A DNA stretch of 64,000 nt from Ostrea edulis (lineage: Eukaryota). The notes below the pieces were generated by a model that did not search any database, was not told the origin of the DNA, and saw nothing but the letters and a program-made list of their open reading frames with translations. Position 1 is the first letter of the stretch, and every line of letters starts with the position of its first letter. The stretch is from assembly GCF_947568905.1 (NCBI RefSeq), contig NC_079168.1, positions 49,290,001-49,354,000 on the forward strand, read 5' to 3'. A program made the position numbers and the translations under genes. Below are positions 537 through 3,600 of this stretch, piece after piece.

Positions 537-626
537 CAGGTTATTTTTTGTTTTGGATACATTAGGGTCATCTGTACCTAATCGTTTGAGGTATATATCT
601 AAAGCTCTTTTATAATAATGTTCCAC
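537..626 (-). CDS. KLC: KLC duplicated exon, TPR4B-TPR5A, copy B ([30 protein letters not shown])
   Basis: Acceptor ttgcag|GTG, donor CTG|gtaaga, 90 nt, phase 0/0, open frame; paralogous to 1069-1158. Confidence 0.9.
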
Positions 627-3600
627 CTGCAAAAGCAATGGGTCACAACACCAAATCAAAATAAGGCATGCAGAAATAAAATTTTTGATCATGATAAAAA
701 ATATATAAATCATTGGTTCCCATCTGTGGTTCCTCCTTCTTGAGACTTTAATCAAAACTTTAATGAAGGGATTTTTTTTCTTTATGAAATTGTCATAAAA
801 TGTTAATAAATTCTTCAACATTTCATTTAATTAGTAATTGATTGTGAATAAATCATGAGAATCATTAGCTAAAAGCCAAGAGTCGGGGAAAACAAACTTC
901 TTGTAAGAAGATTGATGGAAAAATACGCACTAAAAGGTAAACTAAAATGGCATGCAAATACCAAACTGTAAAAATTCTCATGATTCCATTCTTCTGTATC
1001 AGAGTGAACCACAGACACAAACCAAAGTAAAACAAACACCCCCAGAGATTTCCGTGGACCAGTCTTACCAAGTTGTTTTTAGTTTTAGCAACATTAGGGT
1101 CATCTGGTCCCAATTTGGTTTCATATATTTCTAGAGCTCGCTGATAATATTGCTCAACCTGGACAGCATTTCAAAATACTTCAGTACAAACTCATGAGAA
1201 TTATTGTAATTATAAAATGTATATTCAAATCTTTAGCAGAAATTTTTATGCATCTGTTTTCTTGACCAATAATAAATATCATACAAGCATATACAACTAA
1301 AAATATTAACATACAGCTAGATTTCAAATTTATTTTTAGATTGCATATTAAATGTATAGAATTTTCAACCTATCTTACCTCTTCATATTTTCCTTGATTT
1401 TGACATAGTAAGGCTAAATTATTTAATTGCTTCGCAACATCTGGATGATCTTTTCCTAAAACCTGAAAGAAGATTTGAAGTGTTCATATTTTGTCTTTCT
1501 ATCTCAGCAATTTTATAATTATAAACATATTCACCTTTACTACCCACATTCACATGTACAGGTCAGAGATGATGCTAGTCTGAATAAAAATCTCAACAAA
1601 AGTACAAGATCAATTGTGGAAAGTTCTTGACCAAATTCAAAAGTCATAAATCTTCCTTCTTTGGTCAAATCTCAGAATATAATGTAATCCATAGTATGAG
1701 ACAAAATATAAATGTTTCATTAACCAAATAAATCGCTTTGTGGAAAAGTAAAAAATTGTAATGTTGAAAAAATGCTGAAATTCAATACACCCCAAAGAAC
1801 AAACCTTTTCTCTAATTTCTAATGCTCTTTTACAAAGAACAAACCTTTTCTCTAATTTCTAATGCTCTTTTACAAAGAACAAACCTTTTCTCTAATTTCT
1901 AATGCTCTTTTACATAGAACAAACCTTTTCTCTAATTTCTAATGCTCTTTTACAGAGAGGTTCTGCTTCTTTATATTTGCCTCTCTTGCCATATAGAACA
2001 GCTAAATTATTCAGTGTGGCTGCCACCTACAACAGAGTCAAATCATGAAGCAATCAATGTACACATAACAACTGAAAGCAACAGTTAAGTGTTAACGCAT
2101 GTCAATCCAGTAGTCCTGATAAACCAATTATGCTTTTGTTGATATATTGCTCTTTCACTGCATATACATCTGAGTAATACATAATGAAGTTTCTTGAATA
2201 CTAAATTTATGCAAAATTCAATATTGTTATGAATATCAATTAAACAATGAAATACAAGATATATGGCTTATTTCCACTTAGCCCCCTTCCTCCAATAAAA
2301 ATCAAACCAAACAAGAGGCCCACAGGCCTTATCAGTCACCCGAGTATTAGTTAAAAGTATCACTAGCCCCAAGGGCTATGAAATCTATAATAATTGTCCT
2401 GTTCTGCATATCTAAGCTAAATTCTAACATTCAGCAGCAGAAAAGAACAAGATATGTGTTATATTAACACTATATGACTATTTTGGACACGCCCTAGAGT
2501 GAGAACTCTGGGAGTTGCGAAATTCAATTTCAGTATATCCCTTTTCTGATTTTTATAAACAATTTTAGTAAAAGGCTACCTGCTCCTTCTAAATATCTAT
2601 TCAGTTTCAATTTAGTATCAATAGATGGTATTTAAATGTTTTTTGGTTGGTTTTTTTTTTACATAAAATATATACCAAGTTTGGCCCTGTCCTAGAGTCA
2701 GAACTTTTATCTAAGGGATCATGAAATTTACAATTTTAGTAGAGGCTTTCCTGTTTTACTCGACTATGTATCTAGTTTTTCTTACTGCGATTGCAGAGAA
2801 GAAGACTTTTGAAAATTGGCCCTTTTCTGCCAATTTTTGCCTTTTGGGGTGCAGGAGTCCTGATATATACAATTCATGTCCCTCTTGTCTCAAAGATGCT
2901 TCATACCAAATTTGAAAAGAATTGGAAGGGTAGTAATCAAGAAGTTAAAAATGTTCATGCACATTTCATCACTATGATCATTTTGGTCCCATCCTGGTAA
3001 CAAAAACCCTACCCCTGGGAATATAAATTCATAATTTTGGTAAGAGGCTAACTAATACCCATTCATTTTCAATTTAGTATGTAGAGCATCAAAGGTGTTA
3101 CTCAAATGTTTTACGTGTAAACACTCTATACCAGATTTAGCTACGCTCTGGAATCAGAACTTCTACCCCCGTCCCTGGAGATATTGAAATTTGTAATTCT
3201 ACAGACGCCTTCTGCTCTACATGACTATGCATTTGATTTTTTTCTTACAGATAAGCCACTGTATAGATGAAGATGTTTGAGAATTGGTATATTTTTGGCA
3301 GTTTTTGCCCCACCCCTAAGGCCCCAGAGTTGCAGGAATCCTGAAATTTACATTTTATGTCCCCTTTGTCCCAAAGATGCTTCATACCAATATGAAAAGA
3401 ATTGGAATGGAAGTTTAAAATGTTAGATGGTTAATGCATGATGAACGGCAACCAATAGCAATAGGTCACCTGATTCACTCAGGTGACACCCCCCTCCCCC
3501 CCAAATAGAACAGGGCTTGAAATAATTGTTATGGCTTTCATGGTGTGTGTGTGTGTGTGTGTGTGTTGCCATATGTATTTTAAGATTTACAATTTGAACC

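Follow-up and report, generated by a model that had tools for sequence, protein, structure and literature searches.

The first 22 kb of a 64,000-nt stretch of the Ostrea edulis genome (assembly GCF_947568905.1, contig NC_079168.1, positions 49,290,001 to 49,354,000; hereafter the window, whose coordinates are used throughout) carry on the minus strand the gene for a kinesin light chain (KLC), and this gene contains two adjacent, related exons, here called A and B, which are the subject of this analysis (Table 1). Both exons are 90 nt long and lie 442 nt apart, and because the exon upstream of them closes on a full codon, both are of phase 0/0. They are identical at 65 of 90 nucleotides and at 22 of 30 amino acids, with 11 codons differing synonymously and 8 non-synonymously. 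Exon A is of the ancestral type, as it shares 28 of its 30 residues with human KLC1 and is the same as the corresponding exon of Lingula and Pinctada. The two peptides align over all 30 residues to positions 338–367 of the human KLC1 chain 9pmb_C (whole-sequence E-values 3e-23 for A and 1e-16 for B), and the best KLC1 chains in a phmmer search against the PDB were hit with 1e-24 by A and 6e-18 by B, a match that on these values cannot be due to chance for either exon. The alignment to solved structures places both within the KLC TPR domain, where the stretch comprises helix α8 (TPR4 helix B), the loop and the start of α9 (TPR5 helix A; helix naming according to PMC6214655). A preliminary description of this DNA, made from its letters alone, had proposed a tandem 90-nt exon pair swapping TPR4 helix B and TPR5 helix A, with intact splice sites, the same phase 0/0 and many synonymous differences between the copies, and the coordinates, the KLC1 alignment, the splice signals and the codon count bear this out in every respect.

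Table 1. Features of the KLC exon pair and its introns in the window.
Feature	Position	Strand	Description
Upstream exon	1379..1462	-	constitutive; end of TPR3 helix B and TPR4 helix A; 28 residues
Intron before A	1159..1378	-	220 nt; weak pyrimidine tract of A (0.50 pyrimidine)
Candidate partner upstream of A	1190-1203	-	AATTCTCATGAGTT; pairing with 973-991 possible only in O. edulis
Exon A	1158-1069	-	90 nt; AG before, GTAAGA after
A-B intron	627..1068	-	442 nt; carries conserved elements
S1 5' arm, outer stem	1005..1022	-	..UCUGUGGUU..
S2 5' arm, inner stem	973..991	-	GAAUGGAAUCAUGAGAAUU
UGCAUG downstream of A	951..956	-	113 nt from the A donor; invariant in three oysters
S2 3' arm, inner stem	846..865	-	..AUUCUCAUGAUUU..
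S1 3' arm, outer stem	715..733	-	..AACCACAGA..
Block before B	627..686	-	UGCAUG at 672-667 (46 nt from acceptor), GU-rich run GGUGUUGUGA, pyrimidine tract
Exon B	626-537	-	90 nt; AG before, GTAAGA after; derived basic version
Intron after B	1..536	-	first 536 nt in window; next exon (ASAYLKQGKY..) beyond position 1

It was found that exon B is present in 20 public sequencing runs from 8 studies, of which 4 runs are on record as RNA. Four runs from four studies, chosen because they contain B, were aligned to window positions 1-1780; the evidence from them consists of contigs, from which rare variants drop out, and of k-mer depth, which is a rough measure. Every intronic bin has zero depth and the material is therefore spliced RNA. 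A contig joining the donor at 1379 of the upstream exon to B (626) is present in four of the four runs and one joining it to A (1158) in two, the joints being reported as 1377|624 and 1377|1156 with the cut shifted by +2. The A and the B contigs end in the same downstream loose end (at 1068 and 536, respectively), whose reverse complement encodes ASAYLKQGK and represents the next KLC exon, which is known solely as this identical loose end. Thus, every spliced RNA contig seen contains A or B between the same flanking exons. A joint from A to B (1069 to 626) does not occur among the spliced contigs of the four runs, nor is a loose end at 1379 listed among their contigs. In one run the k-mer depth was 11.1 for B and 7.7 for A and in another 17.9 and 7.7, and the remaining two of the four runs contain only B, so that in these runs chosen for B its depth is equal to or above that of A. 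One run carries a different organism label and shows two to four letter differences per exon; in this run also both forms are present.

The 30-residue peptides of both exons occur without a mismatch in O. edulis RefSeq proteins, A in the isoforms X10, X14, X15 and X20 and B in X11, X12, X13 and X16, so that each of the eight isoforms retrieved carries exactly one of the two. Of the three joints that the preliminary description had suggested counting, those from 1379 to 1158 and from 1379 to 626 are seen in the contigs of the four runs and that from 1069 to 626 is not, in agreement with alternative use. Taken together, A and B are very probably alternatively used, effectively mutually exclusive exons of the KLC gene, which arose by tandem duplication of a 90-nt exon.

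Next to O. edulis, the exon pair is present in a wide range of lophotrochozoan animals. A protein word search was run with a natural full-length KLC transcript open reading frame as query (metagenome contig L023:321-2219), which returned 120 named proteins. The genomic order upstream exon, A, B and next exon is shared by seven further named genomes, i.e., Crassostrea virginica, C. angulata, Mytilus edulis, Pinctada imbricata, Lottia gigantea, Lamellibrachia satsuma and Owenia fusiformis, and also by four metagenome contigs, where the splice sites of both copies are canonical. The intron between A and B measures 293-2181 nt in the other taxa. The B protein sequence of C. virginica is the same as that of O. 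edulis, close variants are encoded by Magallana gigas/C. angulata, Mytilus, Pinctada and scallops, and a common pattern of gastropod B is VEKYY[LIV]RALEIYKK[RK]LG... The second form is furthermore present in a chiton, two annelids and two nemerteans, and gene models give alternate isoforms in chiton, abalone, Gigantopelta, scallops and the two nemerteans. The 30 cephalopod and 12 Lingula isoforms each contain one form only, the assignment of a single copy to these two groups being based solely on isoform lists. In vertebrate-like and coral-like metagenome contigs and in another large group of them, there is just one such exon and the next exon comes immediately after it. The one form of the cephalopods (Octopus, Doryteuthis and Sepia; P0074, P0121-P0134, P0220-P0233) is closest to exon B of two metagenome contigs, where this exon reads VEKYYTRALKIYQK[QE]LG, and cephalopods may have kept only a B-like exon. 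In Argopecten irradians, ten RefSeq isoforms contain 18 extra residues (VRTYNLALLCKNQGKYEE) before exon A, which partially repeat the preceding exon and stem either from another duplication at this place or from faulty gene modelling.

The ratio of non-synonymous to synonymous substitution rates (dN/dS) among bivalves is 0.00-0.24 for B and 0.00-0.08 for A, with synonymous sites being saturated in the deeper bivalve pairs. Both copies are thus kept under purifying selection, and the pair persists in the seven further named genomes. When a tree of the 90-nt exons was computed, one clade (support 95/94) united 11 of the 12 B copies, coming from bivalves, the limpet, Lamellibrachia and metagenomes, and contained none of the A copies. 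The B of Owenia, which has a long branch, falls outside of this clade; a clade of all 12 is not rejected by the approximately unbiased test (p-AU 0.44). The presence of this B clade implies that the duplication most likely predates the split of molluscs and annelids and would thereby be more than 500 million years old; it probably took place before nemerteans diverged, too. A has kept the ancestral sequence, as seen from its similarities described above. An old duplication under selection had been proposed in the preliminary description, and the occurrence of the pair from oysters to annelids, the dN/dS values and the B clade all agree with it. Neither a lack of reads over 537-626 nor stop codons in orthologous copies of B, which the same description had named as signs against a functional B, was observed: B is contained in contigs of all four runs and the orthologous B copies are intact.

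At the protein level, B is the more basic of the two forms, as had been noted before, with a net charge in O. edulis of -1 for A and +2 for B. Starting from -1 in A, the net charge of the helix reaches +1 to +3 in B of molluscs and Lamellibrachia and +1 in Owenia. Positions 3, 13 and 14 of the exon distinguish the two forms in all 14 taxa, position 6 does so in 11 and position 15 in 10 of them, and Glu13 is lost in every B. At positions 3, 6, 10, 13 and 14 B carries basic or hydrophobic residues, and on the helical wheel these positions span an arc of no more than 100 degrees that faces away from the invariant residues Y4, Y5, A8, L9, I11, Y12 and L16. It was shown that α8 forms part of the outer side of the TPR domain (PMC6214655). 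B accordingly recodes a solvent-exposed stripe of α8, leaving the packing residues and the asparagine of the cargo groove unchanged; the functional reading of the outer face is deduced from the published vertebrate structures. According to a 2026 cryo-electron microscopy study, one TPR domain locks a motor domain in autoinhibited kinesin-1 via helices of the TPR repeats 2-5 (PMC13371920). The stripe altered between A and B might be part of this TPR2-5 interface, which is our own interpretation; in two kinesin-structure papers, no residue-level statement on TPR4/TPR5 or on the outer surface was found. The changed outer surface could tune how the TPR domain touches the kinesin heavy chain when the motor is autoinhibited, or how it touches some other, unknown partner. 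An effect of this kind, rather than one on the binding of cargo motifs, is put forward with less confidence than the regulatory reading developed below.

An alternative is that the exon choice acts as a switch of cargo specificity, in which B changes how the concave groove recognises Y-acidic or W-acidic motifs. The contribution of the TPR3-5 region to the binding of JIP1 and its Y-acidic motif, which the preliminary description had quoted, agrees with the published structure (PMC6214655). TPR5 helix A begins within the exon, and this part includes KLC1 N386, which contacts the Y-acidic peptide of JIP1 by hydrogen bonding, and the hinge for the induced-fit closure of the domain (KLC1 353-358) abuts the start of the exon (PMC6214655). 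Moreover, position 24 on α9, one turn before N386 and presumably on the same helix face, differs between A and B in 9 of 14 taxa (A to S in bivalves, V/I in gastropods). However, N386 corresponds to position 28 of the exon and is identical in A and B, as are N386/N387 and the KTKNNL motif in both copies of the bivalves, and position 24 is the same in A and B of scallops, chiton, Lamellibrachia and nemerteans. Furthermore, positions 3, 13 and 14, which always differ, are located on the exposed face of α8 (PMC6214655). Since the differing residues are mostly those of the outer side of α8 and N386 is identical, a direct effect on Y-acidic binding is not indicated, and a cargo-specificity switch is considered unlikely.

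Regarding the choice between the two exons, an alignment of Ostrea with two Crassostrea species showed conserved blocks in the A-B intron, among them about 60 nt before B that are nearly invariant. This last block contains the motif UGCAUG next to a GU-rich run, and UGCAUG is found 25-47 nt before the B acceptor in the oysters, Mytilus, Pinctada, Lottia and one metagenome contig. Of 9 lineages, 5 have TGCATG in the 60 nt preceding B (P = 7.6e-6 against each locus's own motif density) and 4 have it no more than 150 nt downstream of the A donor (P = 0.0065), and three control regions contain it in 0-1 of 9 lineages. Of 11 taxa compared, 9 have a pyrimidine tract that is richer at B than at A; in Mytilus the two are equal, and in the metagenome contig m3 that of B is the poorer one. 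RBFOX proteins follow a position rule: binding downstream of an exon enhances its inclusion, binding just upstream represses it. An RBFOX-type protein bound to the UGCAUG downstream of A would accordingly enhance A, and bound to the UGCAUG 25-47 nt upstream of B it would repress B. With its better pyrimidine tract B would be the default exon and A the factor-dependent one, and a single regulator with opposite effects on the two exons would give exclusive use with no need for a barrier by the reading frame, by steric hindrance or by the spliceosome. For C. elegans, it was shown that RBFOX proteins regulate mutually exclusive exons (PMC4165533). We tentatively propose that the A/B choice is set by trans-acting factors on elements of the A-B intron with an RBFOX-type protein as main candidate, a reading that we would place somewhat below an even chance. 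The proposal is derived from the position and conservation of the motif. Against it, the motif near B is missing in Owenia and in the contigs m3 and m10, and TGCATG is generally over-represented in these loci.

Three other routes to exclusive splicing were rejected. Steric hindrance between the A donor and the B acceptor requires an intron below about 40-60 nt, and the A-B introns have 442 nt in O. edulis and 293-2181 nt elsewhere. An incompatibility of U2- and U12-type splice sites does not apply as all donors are GTAAG/GTGAG and all acceptors AG, and exclusivity enforced by the reading frame and nonsense-mediated decay does not apply to exons of 90 nt, which is a multiple of three.

As for the occurrence of the hexamer along the locus, 29 copies of TGCATG were counted on the sense strand of the KLC locus (window 1-23000, minus strand) compared to 4.5 expected from base composition, and 10 copies on the antisense strand. 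A similar pattern is seen in Crassostrea and Lottia, and the rest of the window has an excess as well (27 vs 8.4).

Competing RNA structures are a further means of selecting one of two exons, known as docking-site/selector systems from Dscam, 14-3-3ζ and ATE1. Applied to the KLC gene, the element 973-991 would pair either with 1190-1203, thereby looping A out, or with 846-865. A motif with the palindromic core UCAUGA occurs three times around exon A, and the A-B intron of oysters forms two nested stems, S1 and S2, which are present in both the minimum free energy and the centroid folds. RNAalifold on three oysters keeps S1 and S2 with wobble-preserving changes and one compensatory pair. The duplex energies in all three oysters are -16 to -24 kcal/mol for S1 and -18.4 to -18.8 kcal/mol for S2, the S2 partner is always the best partner of 973-991, and the whole-intron folds have z-scores of -1.7, -1.8 and -3.3. 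However, both stems are contained within one intron and do not by themselves confer an exon choice, and the conserved partner of 973-991 is found solely inside the A-B intron. The upstream partner is second-best only in O. edulis (-14.6 kcal/mol) and with -10.1 and -7.7 is outside the top two in Crassostrea. As the third motif copy could compete in O. edulis but not in Crassostrea, the docking/selector mechanism is not supported. The covariation is moreover thin, with three sequences of which two are close, and the introns of Pinctada, Mytilus, Lamellibrachia and m10 fold no better than shuffled sequences (z = -0.25 to -1.0). A switch via the upstream element was therefore rejected as the main mechanism and is kept as a weak, doubtful rival to control by RBFOX-type factors. 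A stem between the A donor and the surroundings of the B acceptor (alignment columns 1-15 with 458-475) was also considered; it is uninformative because it is built from splice signals and lacks covariation.

Coming back to the exclusive use itself, A and B might instead be independent in-frame cassette exons, with mRNAs containing both or neither of them being normal products. Both exons are multiples of three and all four combinations would stay in frame. Models containing A and B in tandem are present in C. virginica RefSeq (X2/X8/X9) and for M. gigas, Mytilus, Pinctada, Patella, Nucella and Lamellibrachia; these and several ab initio models weigh against exclusivity. So does the nature of the evidence for it, i.e., contigs, which lose rare forms, from four runs selected for B, in which skipping of both exons could not show as a joint because the next exon lies off the window. 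On the other side, both single forms were seen in the four runs with no joint from A to B, and exactly one exon is contained in the eight O. edulis isoforms as well as in all isoforms checked in scallops, abalone, chiton and nemerteans. Most of the A+B models are ab initio predictions of a "hypothetical protein", and no model lacking both exons is found among about 230 proteins. Furthermore, a 30-residue insert would duplicate helix B and half of helix A and thereby break the 42-residue repeat. The tandem models may reflect double inclusion or a modelling artefact, and independent cassette use is judged to be quite improbable. That B is a mere remnant of the duplication, unused or in decay, can practically be dismissed, as its lower similarity to vertebrate KLC is all that speaks for it, and B is spliced into mRNA in four of four runs with a depth equal to or above that of A, has an intact open reading frame and splice sites in every genome examined and evolves with a dN/dS of 0-0.24.

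Among deposited sequences, models with A and B in tandem are found for Patella caerulea, in UniProt entries of M. gigas, and for Lamellibrachia, Mytilus coruscus, M. edulis, Pinctada and Nucella. Models of this kind for in-frame duplicated exons are probably a systematic annotation error.

With effectively exclusive use of A and B, the KLC pair is an ordinary kind of splicing whose isoforms are already in RefSeq. It resembles the substitutions of tandem duplicated exons surveyed in human (PMC9741552) and C. elegans (PMC4165533) in the same length and phase, homology, age, good expression of both copies and the local nature of the swap; no published description of the KLC A/B pair itself was found in the literature. 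The closest comparison is a second pair within the same gene, altering TPR2 (88 nt, window 6595-7088, minus strand), which like A/B is arranged in tandem, alternatively used, old (bivalves and snails) and present in RefSeq. In the TPR2 pair, 88 nt is not a multiple of three and the reading frame enforces exclusivity, whereas the 90-nt exons A and B, which alter TPR4/5, lack this safeguard. All four combinations of the TPR2 pair with A/B are annotated in O. edulis RefSeq and the gene models therefore show no coupling between the two choices. The exons 5B/5A of C. elegans egl-15, which are controlled by ASD-1/FOX-1 together with SUP-12 (PMC4165533), likewise have UGCAUG just upstream of one variant, repressing it. 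In egl-15, however, an intron of 14 nt brings about a steric block compared to the 442 nt between A and B, and the dependence on RBFOX is proven there and deduced here. The exons 7a/7b of human and mouse ATE1 (PMC7797038) form a two-exon cluster with conserved complementary intronic elements, as is the case here; in contrast to ATE1, only the pairings within the intron are conserved in oysters and the competing partner is not.

The vertebrate paralogues offer a further parallel. KLC1 and KLC2 (3nf1_A and 3edt_B; KLC2 VEYYYRRALEIYATRLG) differ in the 30-residue stretch only at positions 6, 13 and 15, and the changes from KLC1 to KLC2 (Q..QTK vs R..ATR) run in the same direction as those from A to B, with Q6 becoming R/K, the polar residue 13 being lost and K15 becoming R. 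Vertebrates thereby use separate genes, with splicing only of the C-terminal tail, whereas lophotrochozoans use an exon choice within one gene. It is conceivable, even though the proposal as a whole has a low probability, that a switch more than 500 million years old and possibly controlled by RBFOX tunes autoinhibition or an unknown outer-surface partner in molluscs, annelids and nemerteans at the positions 6, 13 and 15. The age of the pair and the restriction of its changes to the exposed stripe of α8, at the positions by which KLC1 and KLC2 differ, point to a selected function of this surface. Studies on kinesin-1 cargo binding and autoinhibition have mostly dealt with the concave groove of the TPR domain and with the paralogues of vertebrates, and the outer face of α8 would, if the proposal holds, be a functional surface so far unstudied. 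One gene with one swap of 30 residues constitutes a natural two-isoform system for testing the function of this face. With respect to splicing, the pair is an in-frame one with no frame, steric or spliceosome barrier and with UGCAUG placed as the RBFOX rule predicts. Finally, it matters for annotation, as many ab initio models wrongly include both exons.

Several repeats are located nearby in the gene. At window positions 1793-1958 (minus strand), a 40-nt unit is repeated 4.2 times; it consists of a copy of the final 30 nt of the TPR3 exon (..KRALEIREK) and of the donor of this exon, GTTTGTTCT. The 5' splice site of TPR3 is thus present in four copies (1939, 1899, 1859 and 1819), compared to one copy in C. 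virginica and C. angulata, and use of a downstream donor copy would add 40 nt and hit a stop codon. At 1464, the contigs of one run have the loose end ..TCTGTAAAAGAGC and those of the other three ..TATGTAAAAGAGC, a difference explained either by a synonymous CTC to CTA allele or by use of the second repeat copy. A tandem array of units of about 160 nt (4.7 copies, 75% matches) lies at window positions 8730-9490 inside a KLC intron.

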